Assembly (NCBI RefSeq): GCF_006345805.1
Contig: NC_043011.1
Coordinates: 52,650,464-52,714,463, forward strand
Direction: 5' to 3'
DNA from: Octopus sinensis
Taxonomy: Eukaryota
Length of the DNA stretch: 64,000 nucleotides
Shown here one piece after another: positions 17,454 to 61,715 of this stretch (the stretch's first letter is position 1; each line of letters opens with the position of its first letter). The notes beneath the pieces were generated by a model. That model had not been told where the DNA came from. It worked only from the letters and a program-made list of their open reading frames with translations, and made no database searches. Position numbers and translations under genes: made by a program.

Positions 17454-17544
17454 TATATCACTTTAGATTCCATGTTTCACTACTTATACTGCAATACAGG
17501 ATCACATGAAAAACACATGCTTAATAATATTCCTCTCTCTATTT

Positions 17545-28471: not shown

Positions 28472-28530
28472 CTGTATAGCAAAATAGAAATACATTTTTC
28501 AGCTGATCATAAACCATTCATAATTAGCAT

Positions 28531-31840: not shown

Positions 31841-34424
31841 CAGCTTCTTTAGTTTTTTAATCCTTTTTTTTTTAAATCTTCTTTCTAAAACTCATTTGTC
31901 AAAATTGTCAGAGGTGACTTTATCAGTTGAGCACTGGGGGGGTCTCAATCCTCCCCAAAATTTCTGACCTTGTGCCAAAGTTTGAAACCATTATTATTAT
32001 TATTATTATGAAGGCAGTGAGCTGGCAGGCTTGTTAGCATGCCAGGAAAAATGCTTAGTAGCATTTCCTTCAGTTTTACATCCTGGGTTCAATCAAATTC
32101 CACCGAGGTCAACTTTGCCTTTCATCCTTTCAGGGTTGATAAAATAAGTACCAGTTAAGCATTAGAGTTAATGTAATCAACATATCCCTTCCCCTTTCAG
32201 GGTTGATAAAACATTAACAGGAACAAGTTATTACTACTATTGCTACTGCTACTACTGCTGCTATGGTTAAGACAAAACATATCCCTTCCCTTTTCAGGTT
32301 GATAAAATAAGTACCAGTAATCTGAATGCTGAAGGGTTAAAGTCCATCATTACTAATCCACTACTACTGCCAAACTGTTAAGATAACTACTACTGGAAAA
32401 GAACACACATCTGCTAAGAATTGAACAACTCAAATCCATCATAGTCCATTTTGTTACCATGTCACATTTTCTGACACCTAAGGCCATCAAATGCCTTCAT
32501 GTCACTATCAGAGAATGATCAAGTGCCATTTTCACTGCTAGGTTGTCAGTCATGATACCTTTTCTAATTTACTTACAAGCTGCTCTTCTAATCTGGGATT
32601 TGAACTTTGAATGCTCTTGAAGCAGCTATCTGATAGAATCATAAGCACACCAGGCAAAATGCTTAGTGGCATTTTGGCTGTCTTTGTGTTCTGAGTTCAA
32701 ATTCTGCTGAGGTTGATGTTGGCTTTCATTCTTTCAGGGTCAATAAAATAAGTACCAGTCAAGCACTGGAGTCGATGCAATTGACTTTCTCCTCCTCTTG
32801 AAAACTGATAGCCCTGTGCTAAAATTTGGGACCATTATCTCTAGTGCTCTTAATTGCCCTATGTTATTTTCAGGCATAATGTATTTATATGCTGTTCCTC
32901 TTTTAAGATGGTAGGGTGTAATCTGAAGGTGATTTAGCTTATAAGTTACATGAAGCAGCAGTAGCAGTAGTCCTCCTGCTGGTAGTGGTGGTGGTAGTGG
33001 CAACAAGTTTTGCTTTAATTTGTTAATCCAAATAGGTTATGCAATATCTGTACTGTCTACAAGTGTCAACATTGACTGTAGTTCTTGTTGAAGTTGTTTA
33101 TTGTTGTTGTTAACACAATAGGTTTTCTTAGAATTTCTCCTACAACAATTCCCGATATATTGCAATGTAAACCAATTAAACACATGTCTATAATACAGTG
33201 TCTCTGCTATTTATAACAAGGTCTATACACGAACTAATGAATGAGAGAGCCTCCATATGGTCACTGGCACGCTGTCAGTTACGATGACACAGGTTCCAGC
33301 TGATCCAATCAATGGAACAGCCTGCTCTTGAAATTAACGTGCAAGTGGCTGAGCACTCCACAGACACATAAACCCTTCATGTAGTTCACAAAGAGATTCA
33401 GCATGACACAATGTGACATGGCCAGCCTTTTGAATTACAGGTACACCTCATTTTTGCCAGCTGGAGCAATGTGAAATAAAGTGTCTTGCTCAAGGTCACA
33501 ATGCACAGCCAGGAATTGAACTCACGATCATACAATTGTGAGTAGATTACCTCAAACACTAAGCCACGTGCCTTCATGGTCACTAGAACTGCTAGAAATA
33601 GAAGCCAAATTACTTTAAGCATATATTACACAGTTTTGAATGGGATAAATGGATACACTGGATAATGTAGTCTGAGACAGTGCCAATTAATTGTGTCAAG
33701 CATAAATCTTTCTCTCCAGACATTCCATAATTGATTATACCAATAAGTTATTAATCCTATTAATTGTTGGATGAAAAGAAAAATGGAGTTGTAATGTATA
33801 TATATTCTAATCTCTGGGCATTGTTAATTAAAAAACTTTTTCAAAAAATGAAACCTAGCTTTGATTCAGACTTGGCACAGCAACTAATAATTATTAGTTG
33901 ACCTAACGATAATAGTTAAAGCTAATCTCTCTCAGGCCCAGTGTTGTGTGAAATCAGCCGTAACCAAACCATATCATGTCACACTCAAGTTATGCATTCA
34001 TAATTTGTTTTACATTTTTAATAGTTTACTAATTGCTATAATTTAAACATTCTTTCACATATTAATAACAAAACTAAATGACATTTCCAGAACCAGTTTT
34101 CCTCTCTGGAGCCAGAATATAAAACTGAACAATTATCTACCCTCTTCAAGACGCAGGTGTAATCCTCATTAGCAAACAACTTATATAGTAAACTGACTAT
34201 TTCAATAAATTGAAATACCTACTTACCATATAACATTTATGGCTGAGTACTTCACAAACGTGTCTTTTTGTAACCATTAGGTAAATTGAGTGTCATAATT
34301 GAAAATGAGCGCAGAGAAATAATTGAAAGAAACCAGTATCCATGTTTTCAAACAACATGGATAAGTACAGGTATATCAAACACCATATAACATAAATTTT
34401 TGATTTATTAAAATTATCTCCACA

Positions 34425-34822
34425 GGTGCAGGCATGTTTGTGTGATAAGAAACTTGCTTCCCAGCCACACGATTCCAGGTTCAGTCCCACTGCATGCCAC
34501 CTTGGGCAAATGTCTTCTGCTATGGTCTTACACTGACCAAAGCCTTGCGAGTGGATTTAGTAGGTGGAAACTGAAAGAAGCCCATCCTATATATATATAT
34601 GTATATGTATCTATGTGTGTGTGTCTTTGTGTTTGTCCTCCACCACTGCTGGACAACTGGTGTTGGTGTGTTTATGTCCCTGTAACTAAGCCGTTTGGTA
34701 AAAGAGATTGATAGAATAAGTACTAGGTTTAAAAAAAAGTCCTGGGGTCGACTTCTCCGACTACAACTCTTCAAGGCAGAGCTCCAGCATGGCTGTAGTC
34801 TAATGACTGAGACAAGTAAAAG
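34425..34822 (+). mobile_element. CORE-type SINE
   Basis: Family match. Confidence 0.8.
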
Positions 34823-36555
34823 AATCCGGAGGATGCTATCAAATGGCAATGAAAACTAGTTCCACACGAAAAGGGAGTGATAATCTAATCTCAGGAATCA
34901 AGAATTCTTCAAAGTTGAGAAGCCATTAAAGAAAAGGACAAGCTTATTTTCTGGAGCTAAGAGGACAGTCATTTATGCATTTTTCTAGCTCAATAGCTGT
35001 TATCAGCACAGCAATTGCCCAACCATATCTCTTGGTGCTTTAAACTACAGCTAGTCCTTCCAATGGTTTTCTAGTTTCTGCCAATTCAATTTCACTTCAC
35101 AAGGCTTCAGTCTGGTAGCACAATGAACACTTCATTCAACCACATCTATATCCCTATATCTATCACACACAGACACACTCTCTCTCTCTCATGCACCACA
35201 TCACAAAATAATTTTAATGTGGAGCTGATTATATAAACTCTATTTCCTTCATTTATGTGATATTTGATTTTTAAAAATTTAGTCTGTTAAGGAAGGGCAA
35301 TGGTTATAACCTTTAAAGGCCATCTCAAGCTGGAAATGCTGTACGTTGGTGGTATTATTCTGAGAAAAATGTAGGCATGGAAAGAATTCCTAAAAGTTGC
35401 ACTTTTAATCATTTAATATGTAATCCTTTAGCATTCAGCTTATTCTCTCAATTGTAATGCTTATTTATTGTTTTGAATTTATCATGTATTATCTCATGGC
35501 TTCAAGATTTTGATAATTAATTTAAGGATAACAATTAAGAAAAAAAAACGAAAGGCTAAAACGAAAGCAAAAACTCAAAACAAAAACAAAACGAATAATT
35601 TTAGACACACGCGTAACAATTAAATTAATTTAACAATTAAGAAAAAAGAAACGAAAGGCTAAAATTTAGGGTGAGGGTTAGTGACAGGATGTTGTCTCAG
35701 TTTTAGGCACAGCAAATGATTTTAGCTCAATAGAGGCCATAGGATTGGTTAAAATTCGAAAAATTAAACTACGTTAAACTTTAAAATTACAATTTTCTCA
35801 AGAAAGCCAAGAGAAAAATTTTTTTTATTTTGACACATTCTACCAGTATACGAAGTTTAAAAGTGTTTAGTTAATTAGAAATTGTGTTGAAAACTGCCGT
35901 TCAAAAGGAAAAGATCCCTGTTTTCTCTTAAAGGGTACATGATCAAGAAACGAGTGCCTTCCTATTTCAGTATTTACAACAGTAGATAATCTGTATATTA
36001 TGATATAGTTTCATTTTTTAATATTTCATTTTATTAACATATAAAGCGCGATAGGCGACGACCGTGGACATTAGGCACAGGTCAACAGGCGACGATCGTG
36101 GCCCAGATAGATGCATTTGATTTAGGGGCGTTTGTTGAAATGTCAGTCAAAAAATAGTTCAACTAATGTCTTTTCAGATGATGTAAAACTTGCCACATTA
36201 TATACTAAGAAGATATTTAAACTATTTTTTGTTTTTTATGTGTGCATGGTAGTTGTCATTTTCATGAAATGTGCTCAGCAGTCCATGCTATGTGAGTGCA
36301 AATCCCAGCGCTTTATGGGTTAAAGCGGCGTGCTGAAGAATCTTTAGCACGCCGGGCTTAGCGGCACTTCGTCTGTATTTACGTTCTGAGTTCAAATTCC
36401 GCCGGAGTTGACTTTGACTTTCATCCTTTCGGGTCGATAAAATAAGTACCAGTTAAACACTGAGGATCGGTTTAATCGACTTAGCCTCTCCCCAAACCTG
36501 TTGGCCTTGTGCCATATATATATATATTATATATATATATATGTGTGTGTGTGTG

Positions 36556-36750
36556 TGCAGGTGGCACGTAAAAAGCACCCACTACACTTACGGAGTGGTT
36601 GGCGTTAGGAAGGGCATCCAGCTGTAGAAACATTGCTAGATAAGACTGGAGCCTGGTGTAGCCATCTGGCTTCCCAGATCCCCGGTCGAACCGTCCAACC
36701 CATGCTAGCTTTGAGAACGGACGTTAAACGATGATGATGATGATGATGAT
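36556..36750 (+). mobile_element. RTE 3'-end copy
   Basis: ggacgttaaacgatgatgat tail. Confidence 0.85.
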
Positions 36751-38585
36751 ATATATATATATATAATTATTAGATAATTTTGGGGTTTTTTTCATAACGG
36801 TGAGAGTGGAAAAATTTGCAATCGAATCCCATCAATTATACAAATGTGAGGAGTGATTTTGGCGAAAATAAGATGCTCATCATATATGAAGTTTTGCATT
36901 ATTTAAAAATGAATATTAATGATTTATCATAAGAGATAAAATTAAATTGAGAGTACTTTCTAATGTTTTTATAAGGTAAAATTAAGAGAAATTATTTCGT
37001 TTTATCTGGCATATAATCCCACAAGAAAAACAATTCCATTTAACTCAATGAAACATTCTAAAGGAAAACTTCTAAATCGAAAGTGAAAGAAATTCACAAA
37101 TGATTAGTTGGAATTCTAAGAAAAGTTTCAAAGGTGAGCTGAAATTACTATCTTAAAACTTTTCCGTCGTTGTTACTCCCACATTAGCATTTGCTCGAGA
37201 TAAACCTCGCAAATACTTGGAGACTAACTATGAGAAAAGTTAACGTAAAGGTTCGAGTCTGAACACGCTGTTTACCAACAGACCTGAAAGTTTTGGCCGC
37301 AAGGAACCTTACCTTCGTTACCCGTTAACTACACAAGATCAGAAGATGCAAGGCTTGTACAGAAGGAAAAAAAATGTTACCTTGGTTGTTGACAGTTAAG
37401 TAACAGACATGAATATTATTATCATATTTTATCTAAAATAATTTCGAAAAAAATCGATGGTCGGCGCTAAGATCCAACCGGATTCACAATCTTAAAAGTT
37501 TATCACCAATTCCTTTCTTTTGAAATATATCGAATAAGCTGTCTTATTTTACTTCCAAAAATTGCATTCTTTACTTATTATTGTGGTGCAGGTGTCTAAT
37601 ATGGGTTCTATCGATTTGTTGTCAACGAATTCTTCAGTTCTTCAAATTTTGAACTATCAAGACATTTACTTTTTTTTATCCTAAAGCTTTACTTTATAGA
37701 AACTCTCATCATAGTGTTTGTTGGATTTTGTTTTCAAACTAGAGTGTTTGAGTTACATTTGGCGAAAATTTTCGTAATAATGTATTTATTTTACCAAAAT
37801 AAAATTCTTCTCTGGCCGCCAAACAATCTATATCAATCACATTATCCAACGTGCCCTTTTATAAAGCGGCAGAATGTAATTTGAAGTAGATTTGGATGTT
37901 TTAACAAGCTCTGCGACCACGATGAAGCTTTTTCGTCGCCCCCAAGTAAACAACACTCAAAGCTTCCCCCCGCTAACATTTTTACGATTCATTAAATTAC
38001 TTCAAGCTAGGTATTCAACCATATCTTAGGGGATAAAATCTGCAGAGAGCGAACTAACAGATCAATACATATAAATAATTCACATGAAAATGAACAGTAA
38101 CGAAGCCGGGTAAATGACAAAGTTCTTCACCTTCAAAGAAAGTGAGAGAAGATAGATAACAGCTTATATAATTTAAAGTGTATACTCTGAATAATCGAGC
38201 TAGAAGCCTATATAGTGAAGTTGTTCTCGATTGCTCATCAAAGTGTTACACCCGTCGTCAAAATAAAAATGTAAACAATTAGAGCTGCTTAACTCGAAGA
38301 ATGATTAACGTGACAGAATCTCGACTTCTCGCTTTTAAATACTTCATCGTATAGTTTGGTAGAGAAAGTTGTTTATTATAAAGGGCAACGTGCCGCAAGA
38401 GAGAGACGAAGACTTAGATTTACAGATTTTTGGGACATCATAGCATTCATTCTCTTTCTCAAGAGCATTGGAGACGTTAGCTTAGAGGTTACGATAGGCA
38501 AACGAAACCGAATTAAGGGATCGGTTTTGATCAGACTTCTACGCAGCACGAAGAAAAAATTTTTAAAAAAATAATTAATTCTCAC

Positions 38586-38741
38586 CATTGGTTTGAACCA
38601 TATTGTCTGGTATGGTTTGTTTCGACAAGATCGCAATAATCTGGTAGCTTGGAAAGCTGATTTCGATTGATTTAGAGAATAAATAAGTTCAGAAGAAATA
38701 CTCCAGTCGATGTGTGCCGAGCGAAATAATGCAGTGGCCAT
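38586..38741 (-). CDS. ABCB7: Probable ABCB7 coding exon 1 (mitochondrial targeting peptide)
   Basis: gagATGG start, 156 nt, phase-0 donor ATG|gtgaga. MATALFRSAHIDWSISSELIYSLNQSKSAFQATRLLRSCRNKPYQTIWFKPM is Arg/Ser/Leu-rich. Lies in a CpG-retaining region. Confidence 0.75.
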
Positions 38742-40146
38742 CTCTGTGGTGCGACACCGTTTGTTACCTCCCTTTGCTTCTCACACATTTAACGAGGGTC
38801 GCTTACAGTCATAAAAAAACATTGCTCTCGAAATACTATTCTAGTTTTCTTAGAAATAAAGAAATGTATCCGCATACAATTGCTTAGATATATATATATA
38901 CATATATATATAAATAGCTAAAAAGATATAATATCATGGTTAAGAAAAAAATTATGAAAATTTTAAAGATTCGTGTTAAAGTTTATTTTCAATGATGTTA
39001 CGACGATCTTCCTTGAAGACGAATTTTAAAGTGAAACTATTACAAGTTTGGATGTTTTTTGTTGGACGGCTCCGCTACGAAATAAGTCGACTTTTTTTTG
39101 CATTTTAATTAATCTTTCTAAGAAAGGATAAAGCTCATTTAGGTGAATGATTAAATACAGGAGTAAATTATTTCAGAAATGTTTGGATAAATGTTTATTT
39201 CACATTACAACACTGCTGACAAGGCGAGGCACTTTAAAGAAATCCCACCACACAATCCATCGACTGAGAAGGCGAGGGTTATATTGTCATTACGAAGCAA
39301 CAAGATCCGCAACACCTCTGATCTGATCAATAGCCAGTATGAATTAACAACAGTTGGATTATTCCAGCCGACCCTGGCCAATTCAACATAGACATATTGT
39401 AATATTTTATTTGTTTAAAAACATCTCCATCGTGAGTTTTTTTTTTGTCTCTTTTTTTTTTTGTTCCCTAACCCAATCTCTATATCCGAATTTTATTTTA
39501 TTAATATTGCTTAAACTATTCGAGAAAACTTGATTAAGTCCATTTATCAGGTTTGCTCAGATGCTTTGCGAAAGGACATGAGACAACATTCTTATTTGTG
39601 GAAGGACAATACTCATACATACTCATTGCGTAAATTTACTAAGGTTAACAATATCCTTTTACTAACCCATTTGAGTCTTATAGGACAGAACGTGTTAAGA
39701 AATGAGAGCTCGAACCAAAAGGACCACAACGCAGTCACCCTTCATTGAACCTTAGCAAAAGGATCGTCCGCTTTTTTCTTTCTTTTTCTTTTTCAGAAAA
39801 GTTTTGCGATAAAATCCTAAAGAAAATCCAGCACCTTGTCGTATATTGTTGTTTGTAGTACCAGACCAGTCTATGATCAGTATAGCTTACGGTCAATAAC
39901 CTCACAACCAGGAAGCGAATTAAAGTAAATCAATAGGACTTGAGATTCTCAGGTAAACTCTGACAGTGGACCCTATCCTTCAATGTAACCGTTCACTATC
40001 TTCTCCACTCAGCCCTTTCTCATTGTAATCACAACAAGCAGCATTCTTCCTTATGATTAGGGTACGATTATATCTGGATTGAGAGTTATTTTAGAAAGAA
40101 AAAATTTGATATTTATTCAAAGTCACACTCTACCAACCAGTAAGGG

Positions 40147-41042
40147 CATACCTATATAAATGTGCCTCCCAGACCAATTTTGTTTCCTCATAACTTTTAG
40201 AAAAATGGATATTTCCCTTCATGAAATTTGGTACAAATACCTTACACACTGTATCGAAATTTCTTGTGAAAATGTTTTCAGAAGCCCGTTTCGGAAAATT
40301 TTTAAATTTTTGTCATAATTTAAAAAGGAAAGTGATTATTTTTAATAATTTTTTTTTTACATATACATAGGCGCAGGAGTGGCTGTGTGGCAAGTAGCTT
40401 GCTTACCAACCACATGGTTCTGGGTTCAGTCCCACTGCGTGGCACCTTGGGCAAGTGTCTTCTACTATATAGCCTCGGGCCGACCAAAGCCTCGTTAGTG
40501 GATTTGGTAGACGGAAACTGAAAGAAGCCCGTCGTATATATGTTTGTGTGACAACCGATGCTGGTGTGTTTACGTCCCCGTAACTTAGCGGTTCGGCAAA
40601 AGACCCCGATAGAATAAGTACTAGGCTTACAAAGAATAAGTCCTGGGGTCGATTTGCTCGACTAAAGGCGGTGCTTCAGCATGGCCGCAGTCAAATGACT
40701 GAAACAAGTAAAAGAGATACCTGTGGAGATTAAGATTATATCGGAATATAATGTAAAAAAAGAATGGTGGGCGAGCACACAATCTTCTTATCACATAACT
40801 ACGCCTGCACCTATATCTTGAAATTTTGAAAAAAAATTATGTGATTGCGTGTCTGTATGTGTATGTTCGTGCCCACAATTTTCTTTTTTTTTTTTTTTTT
40901 AATTTTATATTCTTTTTACATATAATTGTAATCAACACCACCTGAAAAATATATGTAGAAAATTTCATTAAAAAATAAGATCTATTTTTCTGAAAGTTAT
41001 GAAGAAACAAAGTCGTGGTGGCAGCACACTTGTATAGGTATG
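40147..41042. mobile_element. Old DNA transposon/MITE with about 80-bp imperfect TIRs, interrupted by a SINE
   Basis: Left catacctatataaatgtg...cataacttttagaaaaatggat. Right (reverse complement) catacctatacaagtgtg...cataactttcagaaaaatagat. Confidence 0.65.
40370..40716 (+). mobile_element. CORE-type SINE nested in the TIR element
   Basis: Family match, short internal microsatellite. Confidence 0.88.
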
Positions 41043-41811
41043 TTGGATAGTTACTACTGGAATAATTCCAATCATAGGTTTGTTGGATCAGCATTGACCC
41101 AAGATTAAATAATGAAAACTGGGCGATGATAGGCCTCACCATTGTAATTATATCTTGGAGAACGTTCGCCCATAACAGAGGAAAAACTACAAATACACTT
41201 TAGTTTTTATTCAGGACCACAGAATATTTTACCACCTTTACAACTATTAACCCTCTGTAATGTGAGACCCACTTTGATGTACTGCTCTTTTACCTGCTAC
41301 ACAGACATTCTACATTGCATCCAGAAGAGGACTACTTAATTCATTGGCATGAATCACACATTTACAAACTTCAGCCTCTGACCTACAGATATGTTGTTTC
41401 CTCATGCCTTTTTACAGTTACTGCAACTGCTTCTGCTCCTTGGAACTGCTTGGTCTCATACTGCCTCTAGCCGGGCAATCTGAATTTACTTGTCTTTTTT
41501 CCTCATCATCCATATTATATCCAGCCTCTCTAGACCTGCACAAATCACTACCATCAATGCTTTCTTCCTTGAACCCCCCCCCCCTCACCTGGAAATTCAG
41601 TCTCTGTACATGCCTTTCTTACAGTAAGTGACTTGCAGTAATTAATGTGGGATGTTAACAGTATCAGTCTGACTAGTCTGAGAGTCCTCCATCAGCTATG
41701 ACCACAGCCTCGTTCTTGCAGAATAAAATAATTATTTCTAATTTTGAGCATAAAGCCAGCAGTTTTGAGGGGCTGGAAGTTGATTACATCTTCCTCAGTG
41801 TGTGACTAGTG

Positions 41812-42177
41812 GTGGAAGCACTCCGTCCGACGAGGGTTCCGGTTGATCCGAATCAACAGAACAGCCTGCTCGTGAAATTAACGTGTAAGTGGCTGAGCAC
41901 TCCACAGACACGTGTACCCTTAACGTAGTTCTCGGGGATATTCAGAGTGACAAGGCCGGCCCTTTGAAATACAGGTACAACAGAAACAGGAAGTAAGAGT
42001 GAGAGAAAGTTGTGGTGAAAGAGTACAGCAGGGATCACCACCATCCCCTGCCAGAGCCTCGTGGAGCTTTAGGTGTTTTCGCTCAATAAACACTCACAAC
42101 GCCCGGTCTGGGAATCGAAACCGCGATCCTGTGACCGCGAGTCCGCTGCCCTAATCACTGGGCCGTTGCGCCTCCAC
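41812..42177 (-). mobile_element. tRNA-derived SINE
   Basis: Minus-strand head GTGGAGGCGCAACGGCCCAGTGATTAGGG...GGTTTCGATTCC. 3' part shared with 33250-33440. Confidence 0.75.
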
Positions 42178-42432
42178 TTGACTAGTACTTATTTTATCAA
42201 CCTCAAAAAGATAAAAAAGCGAAGTTGACCTTGATAATATTTGAACTCAGAATGTAAAGCTGGAAGAAATGCTGCTAAGCGTGTGTCAGGGTTGATTACC
42301 AGTTTAATTCTCTTCTCTGAATGTTTCTCCTATGTAAGGTCAGCATTGATAATACATTCAGTTATTTACTAATCTTGGTGCCATGTGGTGTTTTGAATTT
42401 TAAGTCACCATTAGTTAACTCCTGAGATCACT

Positions 42433-42827
42433 CTCTTTTACTCTTTTACTTGTTTCAGTCATTTGACTGCGGCCATGTTGGAGCACCGCCTTTAGTCAAG
42501 CAAATCGACCCCGGGACTTATTCTTTGTAAGCCCAGTACTTATTCTATCGGTCTCTTTTGCCGAACCGCTAAGTGACGGGGACGTAAACACACCAGCATC
42601 GGTTGTCAAGCAATTCTAGGGGGACAAACACACACACACAGACATACATATATATACATATATACGACAGGCTTCTTTCAGTTTCCGTCTACCAAATCCA
42701 TTCACAAGGCATTGGTCGGCCCAGGGCTATAGCAGAAGACACTTGCCCAAGATGCCACGCAGTGGGACTGAACCCGGAACCATGTGGTTGGTTAGCAAGC
42801 TACTTACCACACAGCCACTCCTGTGCC
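42433..42827 (-). mobile_element. CORE-type SINE
   Basis: Family match. Confidence 0.88.
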
Positions 42828-43420
42828 TACTCTCTTTAACTTTGAAACACTTTCATATTTTGCATGACAAATGTTAAAAATTACCAAACAAATTTGGGCT
42901 CTCTTCTATATCTTTCTTTCTTTCTTCCCTGTTTGTAAGTTGGTTGTTTGAGGAGAAGCACTACCCAAGATCTTTGCAGGACTTGCAGACTGTTGAGATT
43001 GATATGCATTAGAGAATTTTACAGAAGCATATCATCTTATATCTGATGCTTGGCTTGTTTAGCTAGTGAGCCAAATCACCAAGGGTACCTTCTATATTGT
43101 TCTTTCCTGCAAAAATGTAAGGCCATTAATGTTTTTAAGGGTGGATACTAATTCAGTTGTTGGTACATTTTTGTCTCTCTATGTACACTTTAAATGTTAT
43201 TTAGTCTCTTAGTCTTATGTATGGTTCTGCAAGTTTGGATTTTTATGAGGCAGCAAGCTTCCAGAATTATTAGCACACTGGACAAAATGCTTAGTGGCAT
43301 TTCTTCTAACTCTTTATGGTCTGAGTTCAAATCCCACTGTGGTCAACTAAGAAAACAGTTTCAAAATTTGGCACAAGAACGACAATTTTAGAAGTTAGTT
43401 AATTACACAGCACACAGTAC

Positions 43421-43627
43421 TCTCTTTTACTCTTTTACTTGTTTCAGTCATTTGACTGTGGCCATGCTGGAGCACCGCCTTTAGTCAAGCACATCGACCC
43501 CAGAACTTATTCTTTGTAAGCCTAGTACTTATTCTATCGGTCTCTTTTTGCTGAACCGCTAAGTTACGGGGATGTAAACACACCAGCATCGGTTATCAAG
43601 CGATGTTGGGGGGACAAAAAGACACAA

Positions 43628-43660
<33 letters not shown>

Positions 43661-43832
43661 CATATATACGACAGGCTTCTTTCAGTTTCCATCTACCAAA
43701 TCCACTCACAAGGCTTTGGTCGGCCCGAGGCTATAGTAGAAGACACTTGCCCAAGGTGCCATGCAGTGGGACTGAACCCGGAACCATGTGGTTGGTAAGC
43801 AAGCTACTTACCACACAGCCACTCCTGCGCCT
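43421..43832 (-). mobile_element. CORE-type SINE
   Basis: Family match. Confidence 0.88.
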
Positions 43833-45204
43833 ATCAGTACTTGACTGATACTTTATGCATTCCTTGAAACTGTTCTTTTAGTTAATTTTATGCAACAAGT
43901 GCTTTTTATCACAACTAAATCCCTACATTGATTCACCTGGTTTTTTTTTTTGTAAGTTTTCTATTGTATCATTGAGCACTTAGCCATAAAATCCTAATTT
44001 TCTTTGTATCTTTACACATAACAGTCTCTTACAAATCTCCATCAAAACACTGAACATTACCATGAAATTTATGTTGTTTCGCTAATTTATCATAAAAATT
44101 TTAACAGTGGTCACATGATCATAAAACAGTTATGTATTAGAGTTTAAACTCTAATTTCTAAATCAGAAATCTAGTGCTTCATTAATCTTCACCATTTTCT
44201 TTCATGGAAAATATACATTTTACATAGCAAAGACTCACAAATACTGGGTCTATTCATCAGAATGAAGAACAACTTTTATCTGAAACACCTATCTGCTGTT
44301 CTTATGCAAAGTTTGAACTCACTCTTTGTGGCAGTAGTCCTATAGTATACTCACACACACACAAGTACTAGAGAGCATTCAGGGAAAATCAAACACTTGT
44401 TCATTTGTCAACTGTGTCCCTCTCTCATACATTATGTGTTAATCCCATCTAATTACACGTAACATATTATCCCTATATCCAAGCTTTCTATGGTAACGGA
44501 TCTCTCTGGATCACGGGAGCATATATTCCAAGTTACCTCTTCTACAATAGAAATAACTGGAATTACTTAACACCAATAACTCTATCACTACCAACAAACC
44601 CAATGAAACAGGGTAAAGGAATTTATCCTGGGCTTACATGCCAGCTAAGTGAAATCATGGTCATATGGGTGACATGTGAATGGCACCCATACCAATGACA
44701 TGTAAAAGGCACCCAATACGCTCAGTTGTGGTTGGTATTATGAAGGGCATCCAGCAATTGAAACCAAGCCAAAGTAGACTGAAGCCCAGTACAGCTCTCC
44801 ATCTTATCATCTCCAATCAAACCGTCTAACCCATGCCAGTATGGAAAACGGACACTAAATGATGATGATGATGATTTACTTAAGAAACTAATTCTTCAAA
44901 TGGGTCACTCAACATCTCAGATGCCAAAACCGAATGGGAACCAAGCATGATCAATTTGTGGAACATTACTAAGTGCTGAGAGATTGCAGTTGTGCATACT
45001 ATAATTTAAGCTGATCACTGGCTATTCTAGCAATACTTTCACCCATAATTCACATGAGAAGTGAAATAGATATGATATTGGACTACCAGTTCAAATCTAC
45101 TGGTGGGCATATTGTTGTGTCTTTTAGCCAGACATTTCTTTCTGTTTACCTCAGAGTTCTTAGATGTAGCAGCATAGGTATCACATTATCTGGGGATGTC
45201 ACCT

Positions 45205-45479
45205 GAAACAAGGGCCGGTTTCCTAGTTTCTTGGCGTATAGGTTCCTCACCTGGACGGGATGCCGATCCATCTTAGGTGAGCTGCAAGATGCAGGAGGAA
45301 AGATTGAGAGAAAGTTGTGGCGAAAGAGTCAGCAGAAGTTTCGCTATTACCTTCTGCTGGAGCCATGTGGAGCTTAGGTGTTTCGCTCATAAACACACAC
45401 ATCACACGGTCTGAGATTCGAACCCGCGATCCCTCGACCGCGAGTCCGCTGCTCTAACCACTAGGCCATGTGCCTCCAC
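45205..45479 (-). mobile_element. tRNA-derived SINE (5402 family)
   Basis: Family match with intact A and B boxes. Confidence 0.82.
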
Positions 45480-47237
45480 ACCTGAAATAATAGGCTTGTA
45501 TATTTCCTATCCAGGACAGATAATCTTTTATCTTCTTATCAGAAGGAAGTCTTTTGGTTTTATGTTTCATTTTTACTACACTCCATTTACAAAAGAAATG
45601 GGTCATTCACTAACCTGTAAGATCACATGAGAATCCTTATTTATTCTTACAAGTTACAGTGATGGAAAAATTCCTTCAGTTTGATCAGGGAATTAAAAAC
45701 CTTATTAGAAAAAGTAAAAGTATACAAGTTAGTAAGACATTATGAAATTTGTAATTTTGACAAAGATACACTATTACAGAAACAGAATTTATTTCTGTTG
45801 TATCACTCACCCTACCTTATTTCTGCTGAACATTATTTTTCTACAATTCCTGTCCCTATCCATATTCTTCCTCATTTTCTTTTAATCCTTAACTTGCTAC
45901 AGTGTAAATTGAGAAGTTAACTATTGTTGCTTCATCCAGTTATCCTCAATACCAAGTCAAGGTTATAGACACTGTCACTTCTTTTCAGAGTAAATAATGG
46001 TACCAAGCCACAAAAGGGTCAAATCAAATGGTTTCCAATCACTTTAAATTCAATGTACACTGGAGATCAATGGAAGAATTTTTGGCATACTTTACATGGA
46101 AAATTTAAAAAAAGTAAGAAGCTTGCTTCCCAACTACATGGTTCCGGGTTCAGTCCCATTTCTGCTATAGTCTTGGGCTGACCAAAGCCTTGTGAGTGGA
46201 TTTGGTAGACAGAAACTGAAAGAAGCCTGTCATGTGTATACGTACATATACATATATATGTATATGTGTGTGTTTGTACCCCTATGTTTGATAACCTGTG
46301 TTGGTGTGTTTATATCCCTATAACTTAGTGGTTTGGCAAAAGAGACTGATAAAATACGTACTAGGCTTACAAAAGTAAGTCCTGGGGTTGATTTGTTCAA
46401 CTAAAGCCCTTCGAGGTGGTGCCCCAGCATGGGTGCAGTCAAATGACTGAAACAAATTTAAAAAAAAAACTATTGCTTTGTTTTATTAATCATCCTCATG
46501 TATGAATAAACCATTTTGCAAAATAATTAAGCATTAATATTGATTTTCTAAAGCCTTAAAAAAGTCAGTTTTTGATAATCTACAGAACACTTAGATACCC
46601 CTAGTTACCATTTAAGAACCATTGGTTTATCAATTGTATTGGACCTAGTATGTAATATATGTGGAGGCGTGTGGCTTAGTGTTTAAGGTGTTCAACTCAT
46701 GTTTGTAAGATTGTGGTTTCAATTTCTGGACCGGGCAATGCGTTGTGTTCTTGAGCAATACACTACATTTCACATTGCTCCAGTCCACTCAGCTGGTAAA
46801 AATGAGCAATCCTGCAACGGACCGGTGCCCTATCCAGGTGGGGAATATCTGTGCCATGAAAATGACCCTTATGAGTCAGTATGACTTGAGAAGGTAACTT
46901 TGCTTTTTACCTTTAGTATATAACATACATTTTTCTTTTACGATCTACAAATGTATAACAGATTCCATCTTGATAAAATACAACACTCAAGCTGGTGGAT
47001 ATGCCTAAACTACTTCAAAGTAATCATTTAGTGACTCTAACCATTCCTGGCAATCCAATACTTTTCTTAGAATAAATAAACTACAACTTCAGTTTTTTAA
47101 TCAGTTGTTTCACATTATTTTCATGTAATTACCTTGGTGAACAGTAGAAGGGCAAACAAGACATTTAGTTACAAGTTCAAATCCTGCCTGTCAGGTGGGA
47201 CAAGACAAATACCAGTCATGTACTGGGGTTCCCTTAA

Positions 47238-47437
47238 CCCTTTAGTGTTCGCATTATTCTGCCAAAATTAATCCTTTTTTATCCACATTGTTTTGAACTA
47301 ATCATGCATTACCTTGTAGCTATGAGGTACCTGTTAATTTTTTAAACAATATTGTAGGGTTGGTGTGAGAGACCAGATAGGGCTAGTTTGAACATAAAAC
47401 AGGTAGAATATTTTTGGCCGGTTTAAATGCTAAAGGG
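47238..47437. mobile_element. piggyBac-type MITE, family B
   Basis: TTAA|CCCTTTAGTGTT...AATGCTAAAGGG|TTAA. Confidence 0.82.
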
Positions 47438-47769
47438 TTAAATCAGTTTTTCTCTTCAAAAAATTATCTTGTGACATTATATGGTTATGTGGCATGTTTG
47501 CCTCCCTACCACATGGTTTTGGATTCAGTCCCACAGTGTGGCACCTTGGGTAAGTGTCTTTTACCACAGTCCCATGCCAACCAAAGTCTTGTGAATGGAA
47601 ATGGAGAGAAGCCTGTCGTATATGTTTGAATGTGTGCATGTTATTGTCTACCTTGTCATTTTCATTGTAATCACACTGTGTATGTCTGCTTGTCTGTCCT
47701 TGTAATTGTCCCCTCTGTGGCCAATAAAAGAAAATTGTGTTATTGTCTACTTGTCTTGATATTTTTTAG

Positions 47770-48013
47770 TCCGGTGGCACGTAAAATGCACCAATCCGAT
47801 CGTGGCCGTTGCTAGCCTCACCTGGCACCTGTGCAGGTGGCACGTAAAAAGCACCCACTACACTCACGGAGTGGTTGGTGTTAGGAAGGGCATCCAGCTG
47901 TAGAAACACTGTCAGATCAGACTGGAGCCTGGTGCAGCCCCTGGCTTCCCAGATCTCCGATCGAACCGTTCAACCTATGCTAGCATGGAGAACGGACGTT
48001 AAACGATGATGAT
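47770..48013 (+). mobile_element. RTE 3'-end copy
   Basis: Family match with (GAT)n tail. Confidence 0.85.
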
Positions 48014-48544
48014 GTGAGAGTCAGTCATGCAAGTGGAGTCTTTCATTTTCAATTGTCCAAGACATGTCTGGTCATGGGGAATTATTACCTTACTTGGAAA
48101 CAGGAAGGGCAACTGGCAGTAGAAAATCTGGCCCAACAAATTCAATCCAACCCTTGCAAACATGGAAAAATAAATGTCAAAATGATTTTACTTCAATATC
48201 TGGAACTTTGCATGTAGTTAAAGGCCACTATTTTGAGAACCATTGAGACAAAAGTTAACTTAATCAACAATGTTCTGTGCTATTGAAGAACATTTAAGTC
48301 TTTGATCTCAGCATTTGCATATTTATTGGGACAGAGAAACAGAATTCCTAAATATGTTGATCTAAACAATAGAAGAGTAAATGTGCTGATGGTACTGACT
48401 AAGTGTTCTCGGCAAGCTCCATATAATTTTTTTTCTTCACCATACAGTGACCCATGCAAGTAGGGAAAAGTGGACACTAAAACGATGATGAGAGGTTATG
48501 GGCATTCAGTATACAGTTCCTCTGGAAATATTGAGTGAATAATT

Positions 48545-49565
48545 AGATGAATTTCAACTGCTACGAGTTGGTTGTTGGATGTATAGATATATGTTTATGA
48601 TTGTAAAAGGATCTGGAAAGTGATATGGTCAAAGCAAGAATACCTAATCTTAAAACATTGTTTGCACTGAAAAAAAGCTTATAATATTCATGTATTAAGA
48701 AGTGTTGTCTTACTACGGTTAGGAAATTCCTGGCTATGTTCAGAGTAACATCCAAGTTATAGGGTGGATATAGATTGTTAAACTAGGTAAATCCACACAC
48801 TGCCTTGTTTTCACTGCTATGAAATCCTTTGATAGCAGCAGCGCTTCAGTTCCATTTACCTAATCATGAAGTACTAATGGAGTTAAGAGATAATAGCAAG
48901 ATTACACTTGGTAACCATTGGCAGTTTGCAGTTGGAGGGGTTAATTAATCTACATTTAGTATTTGGAGAGGAGAGTGTACATGTAGTCCCTAAAACTAGT
49001 GTAAAAGCGTGGTGATATGCATGAAGATTAATTCATCTTGTGTTTATTGAACTGTATACAGAAAGACTGGGTTTTTCAGGGTGTTTTTTTTTTTGTGTGT
49101 GTGATATTATTTGTTGGGACCTTGGCTTTTTTTTTCTGTTAATATATGAACACTGAGGTATTACTTGAAGGATTTTCTAACATTATCCAAAGTGTTTTGG
49201 AAGGAATTGTGTGAGATGATATTTTTTAATAGGTTAGTTTTGAAATGTTCCAGATCTTTGATTTGAGGTGGGTGAACTTCCAGGTTTTAAATCCACCCAC
49301 TGTTCTGTTTTCAGTACCATGAAATTATTTGAAAACAGCAGTACTCCAGTTCCATTTATCTAATCATGTAGTACTTCAAATGCAGTTAATATATAATAGC
49401 AAGATTACACTTAATAACCTTTGACAATTTACAGTTGGATGTCCTCAGTAATACTCATAAAATAAGGTTTTCCACTGTATGTGCTTGATAACACTTTCCA
49501 TTTCCTCAATTGAATGTATTAGGCAGAGTTTCCTGGATGATAGCCGTATATTCTTGGAATGAAAG
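48545..49565 (-). mobile_element. Degenerate Penelope-like element with RT core deleted
   Basis: Minus-strand KNIRLSSRKLCLIHSIEEMESVIKHIQWKTLFY resembles the PLE N-terminus KNIP....ESVIKRMRWKA. Also GFKT..PPQ.KDLEHF and YPPYNLDVTLNIARNFLTVVRQHF, resembling NPP.S.NV.TNIG..FL..I.KHF. Confidence 0.7.
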
Positions 49566-50689
49566 AAAAAAAAAGGAAAGGGGGAGGTTACTTTATCTTC
49601 AACTATTTATTCTCGATTTGTAACAACTTCTTTAAGTAAAAAATCTATCTACAGATCTGTAAGCTTACACTACCGAAACATGTCTATAGTTGACACTGGC
49701 TTGCAAATAAAAAAATTTTGAAAAACACAGAATTCTCTCTGAAAGGAAATTAACTGGAGAAGTTTTTTAATGACTTAAAGAATTATCTCCCTTCTTCTTT
49801 GTTGCTGAAAAATCTCCACCAATTTTTTTCTTCTAACTTTAAAATATAATTCGTTTTCGAGCACTCACTTATTTATATGTATCGGCATAAGATATAAAAG
49901 TTACCGAGAAATAAAAGGGTGTCGCTCTCAGTGTTAGAAATGCGACTACGACACTATTATTTGGCCATCCACACATATTGCTGTGTAAAGCAAACAAGTC
50001 ACATTTCATCATTAAAAAAAAAAAATATTAATATAGACACAGTGGATGATGTCCTAGATTATATACTTCGTATTAAAATTAGATAGAATGGCTTTGGCTG
50101 GAATACCTTTGGTCGTAAATCTGGTCGATTAGGATTAATACTCCTGGAAGTTATTTAACAACAATATACAACCACCTTACACGAGGAACGGTAATGGTTT
50201 AAATTAACCAGTCTGACGAGGTTTGAAAGGAAAGCCGGTGTCTTTAATAATTGATAGAACCTCACAACAGCCGTTTCTCTCTACTCGGAAACTTTTTTTA
50301 TTGCGTGTTAAATAGCAATGTTTTAAATGATCGATTAAAAGTGAAGATGATGTATCCAGAATTTGTGAATATCCATCATTCTTCCAGCTTTCGTTTATCT
50401 TTTTGCTTTTTTTTTTAAGTAAATAAAGATGGGTTTATGGTAAAGAGTGAGTGAGCAATGCCGTTTTTATTTGACTTTTTATACGTGTGTATATATCGTG
50501 TATATTTATTCATATAACGTTTTTTTGTTACAGATATGTTATATAACAATTAAATCAAGGAAAACTCGTGATCACCATTTAAAATACATGTGTTTTATTC
50601 ACTTTCGTGCATGGACAGCTTAATTCATTTTAAGTATAACCGGTTGTTTAGGATACGTGGCTATTTAAATCACATGGAGAGTAATTGAG

Positions 50690-50970
50690 TACGTAGACGA
50701 GACTAAGAGAGGTGGTGAGATGGCGGGGGCGACGTCGAGAGAATGTTTGAATGAAACAGTGTAAGAGGGAGGAAGAGAGTGCTAGATATCATCATCATCA
50801 TCATAAGCAGCAGCAGTATAGTCTATTCACATATCGCGCGCGCGCACATCCCCCGTCTCCACCATCGTCTTTACCACTAGAGTACGATTCTCCGTCACTG
50901 TCTTCCCTTCCCCGTCGACGGGGAAATTTGTCAAGACAAGCGTCAGTGTCTTTATGGCAAGCGTGCTACC
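50690..50970 (+). promoter_or_regulatory. CpG-rich promoter/5'UTR of UPRT
   Basis: High CpG density, a YY1-like gagATGGCGG at about 50720 and a (CG)5 run at about 50836, directly before the strong Kozak gctaccATGG. Confidence 0.5.
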
Positions 50971-51092
50971 ATGGAGCCAGACCTTATTCAAACTGCCCCC
51001 TGTATTGTAAAAGATGAAGAATACGGACCGCAACTAAAAGTTTTGAAAAATACTAACAATATCAAAGAACTGCAGACGTTTTTACGCGATAA
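50971..51092 (+). CDS. UPRT: Uracil phosphoribosyltransferase homolog, first coding exon
   Basis: accATGG start after an in-frame stop at 50878. MEPDLIQTAPCIVKDEEYGPQLKVLKNTNNIKELQTFLRDK matches animal UPRT (human IGAQLKLLPMNDQIRELQTIIRDK). Phase-2 donor AA|gtaaga. Exon 2 not found in window. Confidence 0.88.
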
Positions 51093-51703
51093 GTAAGATT
51101 CTCTTTTTTTTTTTTTTCTGTTAACCTTCTATCTTTGTAATTATACGGGAAGTAGCGAATTCCATTGTAAAAAATCTCAAGGCCAGTTTTTTTTTATTTA
51201 AAAAAAATCTATAGAGAATCGATGATAATATTACTGTCTCGAATTGGATTCGAACTCAGAACTGCGAGAAGCGAAATTGTTAAAATGTTAAAACATTTAA
51301 CTCTGCGCTTTACTATTTGTGTTTGTTTAAAATTAATTTGAAGATAATTGCATTTTTTATGAGTCGAGAACTAAGTCAATTTCTTGCAAGGTTTCCCAAT
51401 TAACTAGTTGAATCGAATCGAAGCGATGTAATAATTATATATATATATATATATATATAAAGTATGAACGGTCTTCCGATGGGTGAAAGAAAACCCGATC
51501 AAGCGGGTTTTGTATGGCGAAACCCGTGAGAATCATTTAATTAGTTTCAGCATTTAATCTGCACCTCTTTTTATTTACGTATGTGTAAAACAAAAACTTT
51601 GGCATTCTTCAAAATTCACGCATGTGTTTGAAGTATTTATTGCTTCTAAGCTTGATGGGGGTCGAAAGATTAAGCGAGTATCTTTAGATTAAACTTAAGA
51701 TAA

Positions 51704-51741
<38 letters not shown>

Positions 51742-52079
51742 ACTACGAATATTTTAATTAGGATGTTAGATCTCTTTATGCTTAAATTTTAGCGCCATTC
51801 AACCTTTTTTATTTCGCATCATCGAGAATCTGGTCTTTATATATATTTCTACCTCCATTTATCTGACTGCAATAACTGTTTTTGTTGCGGGTGGTGGTTG
51901 GGGGTCGTAAATTTTTGAATTTTATTTCATATTGTGACATAATATCGTAGAGGTGAAGTTAAGGAATTTATAATTCAAGGTAAAAAAAAAGGAAAAAACA
52001 TGTAGACACACACACAACACACACATTCTTCGATAAATACCTACTTCCAGCTATGACCATCACATGGTATTTGCCAATC

Positions 52080-52415
52080 AAATTCCGCCGAGGTCGACTT
52101 TGCCTTTCATCCTTTCGGGGTCGATAAATTAAGTACCAGTTACGCACTGGGGTCGATGTAATCGACTTAATACCTATGTCTGTCCTTGTTTGTCCCTTCT
52201 ATGTTTAGCCCCTTGTGGGTAATAAAGAAATAGGTATTTCATGTCTTAATATTCTGAGTTCAAATTCCGCCGAGGTCGACTTTGCCTTTCATCCTTTCGA
52301 GGTCGATAAATTAAGTACCAGTTACGCACTGGAGTCGATGTAATCGACTTAAAACCTATGTCTGTCCTTGTTTGTCCCCTCTGTGTTTAGCCCCTTGTGT
52401 GTAATAAAGAAATAA
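52080..52415 (+). mobile_element. Head-to-tail dimer of 5'-truncated SINEs (8315 family)
   Basis: Two consecutive aattccgccgaggtcgac...aataaagaaata blocks. Confidence 0.85.
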
Positions 52416-55400
52416 GTATTTACCAGACCGTGTTGCTTACCAGAAGTGAATTATATAATGTAGCCATCGTTTTTTAAAGGTGTTACGATGTGATTCGAAG
52501 GAAATGTGGCTTATTTCTAGAAGATCGACATCCCCCCATGTGTGTGTGTATCAGACATTTCTTTGATTGCTTAATCACAACAACAGAAATCGTGTCCTTG
52601 TGATATTTTGAGAGTTACTTTATCTGTGTGTGAACTCTGAAAATATAACAAGGAAGATGTATATTTCTTCCGTTTTGATGATTAAGCTATTAAAGGAATA
52701 TCTATATATATATTTAAAAAAAACCCTATTGTTTGTGTTTTACGTTTTATAAAAACTGTTCATCTTCTTCAACACATGCACGAACGTGTGTGTGTGTGTA
52801 ATTTTATCCGCTTTTAGTAGCTTAAGCCGGATTGTTTATATTTTCTTTTGCAATTTGATAAGAAGGAAGTTCTTTTCGTGTGAATCCAGTAGACCAGAAA
52901 ATCAAAATATAAGGCTGATGGTGAAAGCAATTGTCGATGACTCCTGTTTCTATCAGAAATCTCAATTTTGTTCTTTTCTTTTTTTAGCCCCTAGACAATC
53001 GTGATCGAGCAGTCTTCTATTATTATATTTTTTGCTTCTTTTTGTGTATAAGAGACATCATTGCTTTGTTTATTCTTCAATTAAAACAATAAGTCGGTGC
53101 GATTAGAGGGAGATTTGGCTACTGGTTAGCGACCACCACGTTGGACAGCCTGTCTTTTATATTTGTCTGTCTGAGACAAGTCATTATGCTATATCAGTTT
53201 ATGATTGGTAGTTTTAAATGGATTCATTAATACCAGGGGGTCTTTAAAATGCGTAACTAATTTAATTACCCCCTTCCACTTCCATTATGTTCGGGTTTAA
53301 CCCTATTTTCCCCATTTTCCACTGCCTTTCTCGTTTCATACCGTTTTCATAAAACTGTTTCTTTTGTTATATATATATATATATATATCAATCAATAATA
53401 AAAGGGTAAAATCAATTAATTATTAATTAATTTCACCAAGTAGTGTATCTGGGAGACTTTTCTTATAGTAGTAGAAATGGCTAAAAAACTTTTTGGCTGC
53501 TATTTCTAAAAGTTTCAGTATGTGGTTAAAGTAAATTATTTTACTGAGCCCTAATTATATAACGTAATATATATATATATAATTATGGCGGTGCCCCAGC
53601 ATGGCCACAACTCGTGAGCTGAAACTAGAATCAATCAATCATATATATATATATATTATATATATATATATATATGAGAGAGATATAAGTATGAAGACAA
53701 CTCCCTAGCCTTTGTTAAAGAATGATAAGGGCCTGAGGTAAAGATTACGTACACCACCCATTTTCGGCCTAACAATGACCCTTACCCTAAACACCGGGCG
53801 CACGTATTCTTTACTTTTGCCGCGAAATATGTGCTGTTAGCTTGTGTCTTCATTCATTGTTCGTTTTGCAATTTAATTAAGACTTCCTCAGATTACGTTC
53901 GTTTCTTCGATTTTTACAAAATTTTCATCTGATATCTGCCGCAATATTCCCCCCCCCCCCACACTTAACATCGTAACTTTGATCCAAGAGGAAAATACTG
54001 TTCTTAAATTCTATAAACTGCTTTTTGAAGTGTAATTATAAACTGTTTACTTTTTTGATAGACAATGAATAGTGTTAGATGGCAATGTTCGATGCTCTGT
54101 ACATAGTAATATAAATATATATATATTACACAATTGTACAGTACACGTGGCTAATCGACCTGGTAGAAATAGCAGCCAAATATCCACACCCTACCATCGT
54201 TAAAAAAAAAAGGATGATATGGTCCTAAAAAATGACTAGATAGCACTTGGACGGAATGTCTACTGCGTCAGGACTGACCTGGAACCAAATGCATATGGTG
54301 CTGTTTTGTGGATCACTTCATAGTCTCTGACATGTCTCTTATTGCCGACATTAAAATATTTAAAGAATTATTCGTCTTTGTCGGCATGTAGTGTATATAT
54401 ATATTTATTTAGGTTATATTTTGTCTTCCGTGTATTACTTCTGCTTTTTTTTAGTTTTTGCCTGAACAAAGGCATTTTTTTTTACCTTGGATATTCGGTG
54501 GCTGAGATGAAATTACAGTTTTAAATACCTTATAATGTTTTAGCTAATGATAACGTTGACAAAAATAAAATGAATGAAAATCATAAACTTTAAACTTATT
54601 GTAGAAAGCTTTTTTTACTAATAATAATTCTTATCATTAACATTAAAACTGACATGTTTGATCTTTGTTTATTCTGCCGATCACTTATCAAATGCCGATC
54701 GCTTCGTATTAACAGGTGGTCTCTCTTACGAACTCTGATAGTCATTCTTTTCTTTAGATCGGCAGGTCAGTATCCTCTTATGGCAGTTGTTTCGATACTA
54801 CACTGGTTTATCAATAATCATAATTTTACTCGGTTCCATTTCGTTGGTTAGCTGCAGATTTAGTAGGAAAATAAACTAATCATATTTTAGGACTGATAGC
54901 TTCTGTACACCGTTCTTTGTGTGTATGTATACACACAACAGCCCTTTTTTTTTATCTGGTTAGAAAGTAATAAAAATTGGAGGAATCATTGGAATGTTGA
55001 ACGAAAGGATTAAGTAAAAATCCCACCCTAATCAATCCGCCTCTCAGCTTTGTAGGGTCGATTGATGTGTATGCGTTATGTGGGTGGATGTACATCAAAT
55101 CAAAGGGAACTGCTATGCAGTTAATTAGTCTACTGAAAATAGCAATCAAATCACAGTGTCATCTTAAAAGAAGGCCAAGTTTGATAATGTAACCGTAGAT
55201 GATACGCCGGAGTAATTGCTAAAATAGTTTTTTTTTTTATCTACGATCAACTAATATATAATCCAAATAAAAAGACAGAGTTTAGCACATCGTTAATGAC
55301 CAGTTACAATTGTTTTAAACACCATTGCATGTTAAAGTACCATGTGAAAAGTTATGTGATTGCAGTTTTAAAGTTAAGAGTACCCCTTCGTCAGACTTGC

Positions 55401-55470
55401 ATCAAAGGATGGACTCTTATATTGTTCACAAAGTATGAGCACACCTTTTGATGCAAGTCTGAAGTGCCTC

Positions 55471-55620
55471 TCTTTCTTATCAGCTTAATATCTGATGTGG
55501 CCCCTATTTAGGGCCACCGATATTAAACTGATATTTAGAACGAGGCGAAGAGTTAGGGACTTGCTCCACCTTTGCCACGGGTTGGTCTGGTATAGCAGTA
55601 CTTCTAGGATTCAGCCCATC
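55471..55620 (+). pseudogene. 5'-truncated U2 snRNA copy
   Basis: TTCTTATCAGCTTAATATCTGAT (stem IIa), GTGGCCC/GGGCCAC (IIb), CTTGCTCC, CTGGTATAGCAGTAC (stem-loop IV). Stem I and the GUAGUA branch-pairing sequence are missing. Sm site reads ATATTTA. Confidence 0.85.
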
Positions 55621-61703: not shown

Positions 61704-61715
61704 TATATATATATA

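Follow-up and report, generated by a model that had tools for sequence, protein, structure and literature searches.

Within a 64,000-nucleotide stretch of Octopus sinensis DNA (NCBI RefSeq assembly GCF_006345805.1, contig NC_043011.1, positions 52,650,464 to 52,714,463; this whole stretch is called the window hereafter, and positions are counted from its first letter), two genes are transcribed away from each other. ABCB7, which encodes the mitochondrial iron-sulfur exporter, lies on the minus strand and a homolog of uracil phosphoribosyltransferase (UPRT) lies on the plus strand, with about 12.2 kb between their start codons. The initial annotation of this DNA, made from the letters alone, had noted that the human counterparts are also adjacent and had proposed that the linkage dates to the bilaterian ancestor, that it survived the rearrangement of cephalopod genomes, and that shared cis-regulation keeps it. 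The locus raises the question of whether two genes this far apart are an ancient couple or chance neighbors, and of what holds them together. Judged by gene identity, order, and orientation, the head-to-head ABCB7-UPRT arrangement in octopus is very probably an inherited bilaterian gene pair.

The identity of the minus-strand gene was examined by tblastn with ABCB7 homologs, which detected twelve conserved ABCB7 exons on the minus strand from 28.5 kb to 7.1 kb. Splice-site chaining then yielded a partial model of 13 exons with AG/GT at each junction and an open frame of 614 aa, and most of the donors read gtaag. Exon 1 (38741-38586) begins with the ATG at 38741 and comprises 156 nt or 52 codons, ending in phase 0 at a gtgag donor, exactly as the initial annotation had placed it. 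Tblastn and splice chaining located exons 2 to 5 at 28471-28268, 27638-27509, 26230-26044, and 24095-24014; exons 6 to 9 at 20480-20392, 19043-18956, 16873-16699, and 15366-15209; and exons 10 to 13 at 12165-12002, 10403-10274, 9528-9354, and 7250-7147, all on the minus strand. The C-terminal tail of ABCB7 was absent within the window, and the last coding exons lie past its left edge.

The layout that defines a half-transporter is a single transmembrane domain (PF00664) with a single nucleotide-binding domain (PF00005) after it. Following its transmembrane region, the octopus model carries a Walker A motif (GGSGSGKST), the signature LSGGEKQR, and a Walker B motif, which is the half-transporter layout. 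PF00664 occurred in all ABCB7 homologs retrieved, with or without PF00005, the models returned being fragmentary. Human ABCB7 shared 58% identity with the octopus model over 430 aa. In a search of the PDB, the model matched human ABCB7 best (334 bits), followed by plant ATM3 (276), yeast Atm1 (240), and ABCB6 (138-140), and neither ABCB8 nor ABCB10 was among the best 60 matches listed. By these scores, the octopus minus-strand gene appears closer to ABCB7/Atm1 than to the paralogs ABCB6, ABCB8, and ABCB10.

The first exon of ABCB7 encodes a 52-aa N terminus that is rich in Arg and Ser and poorly conserved, and it is presumed to be a mitochondrial presequence. Because the N-terminal part of the protein evolves fast, this exon is beyond confirmation by similarity; its call is supported instead by the good context of the ATG, by the 156-nt length and phase-0 gtgag donor, by the frame kept into the phase-0 acceptor of exon 2 at 28471, and by the scallop Pecten maximus, in which ABCB7 exon 1 is also 156 nt long and of phase 0 and the two ends are alike (MAGAL...QTAWIKLP versus MATAL...QTIWFKPM). 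Taken alone, the 52-aa ABCB7 and 41-aa UPRT first exons gave no Pfam match, both being too short for Pfam.

The sole UPRT exon within the window is exon 1 at 50971-51093 on the plus strand, which opens with the ATG at 50971 and runs through 41 codons to a gtaag donor. Intron 1 exceeds 12.9 kb in length, and the remaining gene lies past the right edge of the window. The full-length protein was found with a chimeric query made of the window exon and about 100 residues of the human UPRT core, a stretch that agrees fully with the core of Pan paniscus UPRT (P0159). This query returned 120 proteins, every one with PF14681, and all those that were descriptively named were uracil phosphoribosyltransferase or its homolog. 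The second match was the Octopus protein P0122 (221 aa), whose residues 1-41 are identical to the translated exon at 41/41 positions, and the start at 50971 given by the initial annotation was thereby borne out. The sole significant domain in P0122 was PF14681 (UPRTase, residues 27-206), and the protein was 65% identical to hominid UPRT. The exon 1 start, MEPDLIQ, is common to nemertean and annelid orthologs, and the exon shares 71% DNA and 68% protein identity with cuttlefish UPRT exon 1. The enzymatic role of the animal UPRT homolog is not clearly established.

A UCK/UCKL1-type paralog, which the initial annotation had regarded as the competing identity of the plus-strand exon, was excluded by the stand-alone UPRTase domain together with an animal-type short loop. 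When P0122 was aligned to Toxoplasma UPRT, gaps of 7 residues and 2 residues appeared, and they correspond to the shortened C-terminal uracil-binding loop of the animal type. P0122 has HPVAP..HFGQKYFGT in place of YIVPGIGDFGDRYFGT; this motif, which is also found in hominid UPRT, is encoded in the part of the gene outside the window. No kinase-like open reading frame (ORF) was found upstream of UPRT exon 1, and P0122 has no uridine-kinase domain, which excludes the UCKL1 alternative.

The spacer from the ABCB7 ATG to the UPRT ATG occupies 38742-50970 (12,229 bp). As had been stated at the outset, only repeats were recognizable in it, and an intervening gene, which would have undone the pair, was not detected: no Pfam match came from ORFs of at least 40 aa in any of the six frames (obvious ORFs derived from short interspersed elements, SINEs, were excluded from the scan), and neither a tRNA nor an Rfam family was found in 38742-50970. 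Repeats with matches elsewhere in the window cover 3,319 bp (27%) of the spacer, and the remainder (about 70%) is unique within the window and unclassified. The repeats form at least 14 pieces, including 40358-40716, 42001-42282, 42430-42829, 43418-43856, 44681-44875, 46113-46473, and 47769-48014.

CpG observed/expected ratios were calculated in a 1-kb sliding profile, for which the window median was 0.39. Values of about 1 or above occurred only at 35.5-39.5 kb and 49.5-52.5 kb. The first of these CpG-rich islands (35500-39500, ratio 0.98-1.21) covers the 5′ end of ABCB7 and the beginning of its first intron, and the second (49500-52500, ratio 0.95-1.59) covers the UPRT 5′ end. The two are about 10 kb apart, and the DNA at 41-49.5 kb is CpG depleted (ratio 0.14-0.61), like the rest of the window, with no third island in the spacer. 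The presence of one CpG-rich island at each gene 5′ end supports both exon 1 calls. From their composition, the islands would represent two separate, historically unmethylated promoter regions, so that octopus would have no single core promoter common to ABCB7 and UPRT.

The arrangement in other animals was examined by UPRT-side look-ups in eight species, each locus consisting of the gene with 10 kb on either side and each spacer being measured between the annotated coding starts. In seven of the eight species checked besides octopus, ABCB7 was located upstream of UPRT and on the other strand, and the orientation was divergent (5′-5′) in all seven of these loci, as it is in the octopus window. 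The spacer was 282 bp in the sea star Acanthaster planci, 326 bp in the scallop P. maximus, 343 bp in the amphioxus Branchiostoma lanceolatum, 1,641 bp in the sea spider Nymphon striatum, 2,012 bp in the teleost Collichthys lucidus, and 2,863 bp in the annelid Capitella teleta. In Dimorphilus gyrociliatus, a very compact annelid, ABCB7 lies 4.4 kb upstream of UPRT with two genes inserted between them. The immediate upstream ABC gene in six species contained ABC_membrane and ABC_tran domains (ABC_tran was missing in a truncated amphioxus model), and by tblastn the neighboring ABC genes matched human ABCB7 at 55-84% identity over most of the aligned exons and at lower identity in the weakly conserved N-terminal part. 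In the cuttlefish, no ABCB7 exon was found in the 10 kb upstream of UPRT, a flank shorter than the 12.2-kb spacing of octopus; since the octopus spacing alone exceeds 10 kb, this look-up is uninformative.

In vertebrates, the gene order NEXMIF-ABCB7-UPRT-ZDHHC15 appears in published human, sheep, and turkey gene lists. The same orthologs are thus adjacent at human Xq13.3, and the teleost likewise has a DHHC gene just downstream of UPRT. The initial annotation had described the human genes as both adjacent and divergent; the adjacency is found in papers. We take the human genes to be divergent with a spacer of about 100 kb, presumably enlarged relative to the invertebrate spacers.

The initial annotation had allowed that the two genes might be unlinked in intermediate lineages. 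Instead, they are linked in two annelids, a bivalve, a sea spider, a sea star, amphioxus, and a teleost. Since this divergent arrangement is common to spiralians, an ecdysozoan, and three deuterostome lineages, it is most parsimoniously traced to the bilaterian ancestor, and the pair dates back at least that far, as the initial annotation had proposed. Patella caerulea was considered as an unlinked case, with an ABCB7 fragment (P0063) on a 43.5-Mb contig and UPRT (P0154) on an 18.4-Mb contig, and was set aside, P0063 being partial and an odd model and the search having listed proteins of up to about 1.75 times the query length, so that a full-length ABCB7 could have escaped it; the Patella gene model on the ABCB7 side spans 145 kb.

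Two of these loci showed further features of their own. The Dimorphilus annotation (CAJFCJ010000021.1, 837-9672 of the retrieved locus, minus strand) fuses three genes into one 1,322-aa product, in which a SIAH-like ORF occupies 8485-9498, a DNAJC28-like gene occupies 8060-8401 and 6439-7089, and ABCB7 runs from about 5543 downward. In the butterfly Maniola hyperantus, the ABCB7-like locus (LR761652.1, 10001-27568, plus strand) holds two tandem ABCB7-like copies, matched to human ABCB7 by tblastn at 12.1-20.2 kb and 24.6-26.8 kb, with a HORMA-domain gene and an unannotated gene of 457 aa as its upstream neighbors.

A sequence of events that would link the short spacers to the octopus locus can be proposed as follows. 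Ancestrally, ABCB7 and UPRT most likely shared a compact bidirectional promoter, their start codons lying about 0.3 kb apart, and the present spacers of about 300 bp would still function as such promoters. A break within so short a spacer would damage the promoter or promoters of two broadly needed genes and would be selected against, and the harm of such breaks could have preserved the pair over more than 500 million years. Along the lineage to octopus, orientation and adjacency would have stayed unchanged while the spacer grew about 40-fold to 12.2 kb by the gain of SINE-like repeats and other, unclassified DNA. These insertions would have separated the halves of the promoter, so that each gene now has an island to itself, and vertebrates would have undergone the same change independently. 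Within the explanation of an inherited pair, we are on balance inclined to regard the octopus locus as such a split former bidirectional promoter, and it may be selection, not inertia, that holds the pair together there.

The locus can be compared with recognized classes of gene pairs. Bidirectional-promoter pairs, as Adachi and Lieber reportedly described them in 2002, are head-to-head with less than 1 kb between them. Distances of 282-343 bp between start codons place sea star, scallop, and amphioxus within this limit, and a gap of about 300 bp between divergent start codons is the hallmark of a bidirectional promoter, whereas octopus, with 12,229 bp and two separate CpG-rich islands, is well outside it. 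The locus also resembles the conserved ancestral microsyntenic pairs (CAMPs) of Irimia et al. 2012, such as HSPD1-HSPE1, which are likewise non-paralogous, adjacent across phyla, and 5′-5′ with mostly short spacers. ABCB7 and UPRT belong to unrelated protein families, and they are adjacent in Annelida, Mollusca (Bivalvia and Cephalopoda), Arthropoda (Pycnogonida), Echinodermata, Cephalochordata, and Vertebrata. Unlike HSPD1-HSPE1, their products have no known functional relation, and the octopus spacer is 12 kb in place of less than 1 kb. Enrichment of conserved ancient pairs in 5′-5′ orientation and short spacers has been reported (Irimia et al. 2012, PMC3514665).

Several observations weigh against the proposal that promoter sharing and selection account for the octopus pair. 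With a spacer of 12 kb, sharing of a promoter no longer explains why octopus retains the pair, and promoter function and co-regulation of ABCB7 and UPRT are, in every species, read from gene arrangement and sequence composition. When the octopus spacer was compared by blastn with the 10 kb upstream of cuttlefish UPRT, UPRT exon 1 was the sole match and no conserved non-coding DNA was detected. No consistent motif among NRF1, GABP/ETS, YY1, Sp1, CRE, CCAAT, and E-box was shared by the short spacers and the octopus promoter-proximal regions. Thus, of the shared cis-regulation suggested at the outset, the part that concerns the spacers of about 300 bp is plausible, whereas for octopus it is a conjecture, the islands there being about 10 kb apart and neither conserved non-coding DNA nor a shared motif having been found in these comparisons. 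Moreover, the linkage is dispensable in some lineages: the ABCB7-like locus of Maniola has no UPRT nearby, Dimorphilus tolerates two genes between ABCB7 and UPRT, and in Drosophila ABCB7 is flanked by CG13926/Ogdh2 and GC/nSyb and the pair is lost (PMC13647128).

The most probable of the rival explanations is neutral inertia, in which the genes are not coupled at all, a spacer of a few hundred base pairs offers a tiny target for breakpoints, and the 12 kb of octopus are merely unbroken so far. The very short spacers of sea star, scallop, and amphioxus fit this explanation, as do the loss or interruption of the pair in Drosophila, Maniola, and Dimorphilus without obvious consequence and the failure to find a conserved non-coding element or motif in the octopus-cuttlefish comparison or in the short spacers. 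To our knowledge, the products of ABCB7 and UPRT share no common pathway, which also counts for inertia. Nevertheless, none of the eight lineages that have the pair departs from the strict 5′-5′ orientation, not even the teleost and octopus, whose spacers are enlarged, and octopus keeps the pair although coleoid genomes are heavily rearranged. Furthermore, 5′-5′ pairs exceed the neutral expectation genome-wide (Irimia et al. 2012, PMC3514665). Taking both sides together, we consider inertia a possible but less probable account of the locus.

The initial annotation had stressed the survival of the linkage in a reshuffled cephalopod genome; the pair is indeed kept, but its survival is less remarkable than supposed, as 275 metazoan microsyntenies are retained in Euprymna versus 216 in scallop (Schmidbaur et al. 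2022, PMC9023564). The octopus locus resembles the metazoan microsyntenies that coleoids retained, which likewise combine ancient linkage with an intergenic space larger than in newly formed cephalopod blocks (PMC9023564).

A second alternative is a long-range regulatory block, in which enhancers within or beyond the partner gene, or one constrained chromatin domain, would tie the genes together. It would accommodate the linkage kept across the 12-kb octopus spacer and in mammals, as seen in the published gene orders, and the presumably large mammalian ABCB7-UPRT spacer would likewise count in its favor. A genomic regulatory block, however, consists of a developmental regulator as target and of arrays of conserved non-coding elements spanning bystander genes, and neither ABCB7 nor UPRT is a developmental regulator. 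The octopus locus departs from that definition also in its DNA, as no conserved non-coding sequence or array was found in the comparable region, the 10 kb upstream of cuttlefish UPRT, and the middle of the spacer is CpG depleted and partly made of repeats. We therefore regard such a block as unlikely.

The spacer might also conceal an unrecognized gene, such as a lineage-specific ORF, a long non-coding RNA, or a small RNA, in which case ABCB7 and UPRT would not be truly adjacent in octopus. About 70% of the spacer is unclassified sequence unique in the window, sequence scans are blind to novel non-coding transcripts, and two genes did insert between the pair in Dimorphilus. The absence of a Pfam match in ORFs of at least 40 aa, of tRNA and Rfam matches, and of a third CpG-rich island in the spacer argues against a hidden gene, which we judge to be quite unlikely. 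More improbable still would be a real functional link between the UPRT homolog and ABCB7, or a linkage that predates Bilateria, for which the strict divergent arrangement is the sole support; one form that such a link could take, offered as speculation, is co-regulated action in a process where sulfur or iron-sulfur species exported from mitochondria are used on substrates that contain uridine. Convergent juxtaposition of the two genes in octopus and vertebrates, conceivable given that coleoid genomes formed many new gene neighborhoods (PMC9023564), is effectively refuted, since annelids, a bivalve, a chelicerate, an echinoderm, a cephalochordate, and a teleost all have ABCB7 and UPRT paired in this orientation, and such convergence deserves almost no credence.

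The DNA around the pair is AT rich and repeat rich. Much of the recognizable repeat content in the spacer and the ABCB7 introns comes from a SINE-like interspersed repeat that has a TA/CA microsatellite inside it and occurs at many sites on both strands. Examples were found in the left half of the window at 17038-17476, 20010-20285, 23322-23717, 28502-28975, and 34296-34855, and in the right half at 40323-40675, 42588-42874, 43526-43845, 46070-46309, 59350-59583, and 61695-61958; the ORFs of this repeat, which read THQHRLSS... or ...CPRCHAVGLNPEPCGW, are spurious. Four well-preserved tandem arrays were detected, with units of 63 bp × 12 at 1044-1799 (95% matches), 126 bp × 5 at 11248-11878, 182 bp × 1.9 at 52078-52421, and 146 bp × 5 at 62883-63609 (97% matches). 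A dispersed repeat found near 21.2 kb, 47.8 kb, and 58 kb is a relative of the 63-bp unit.

Mobile elements and a structural RNA were also recognized within the introns of the pair and elsewhere in the window. Between ABCB7 exons 9 and 10 lies a remnant of a mariner/Mos1-type transposase (13222-13509, plus strand; Pfam HTH_48, E = 3.5e-10), which an adjoining ORF at 13463-13786 appears to continue in a different frame. A full-length U2 spliceosomal small nuclear RNA gene or pseudogene is located in UPRT intron 1 (55441-55624, plus strand); it matched Rfam RF00004 over model positions 1-192 of 192 with 82.7 bits and was the only Rfam match in the window. The ORF at 56970-57893 (plus strand) combines a PHD-finger match (E = 3e-5) with a downstream conserved tail (RLRWYGHV...), which recurs at 10961-11260 (minus strand) and in the region of the 146-bp array. 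The PHD-finger ORF and its tail are probably the 3′ part of a retrotransposon.

No searchable paper treats ABCB7 and UPRT as a conserved pair, and none joins ABCB7 with a bidirectional promoter or the UPRT homolog with microsynteny. The main text of Irimia et al. 2012 (PMC3514665) does not mention ABCB7-UPRT by name, and neither gene name occurs in the searched supplementary files of Schmidbaur et al. 2022 (PMC9023564) or Robert 2022; the pair may nevertheless sit in an already published list. Overall, as a conserved 5′-5′ microsyntenic pair it is solidly documented but ordinary, and what is odd in octopus is a spacer swollen to 12 kb. Because hundreds of such pairs are known and cephalopods match scallop in ancient microsyntenies, current views are left unchanged. 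The value of the locus lies in being a clean and easily checked ancient divergent pair that extends from annelids and molluscs to vertebrates. Sea star, scallop, and amphioxus, with spacers of about 300 bp, and octopus, with its 12-kb split, form a natural experiment, a contrast that lets one ask whether a shared promoter, a longer-range constraint, or inertia stands behind 5′-5′ pairs. For the poorly understood animal UPRT homolog, the conserved neighborhood with ABCB7 provides a "guilt by association" lead.

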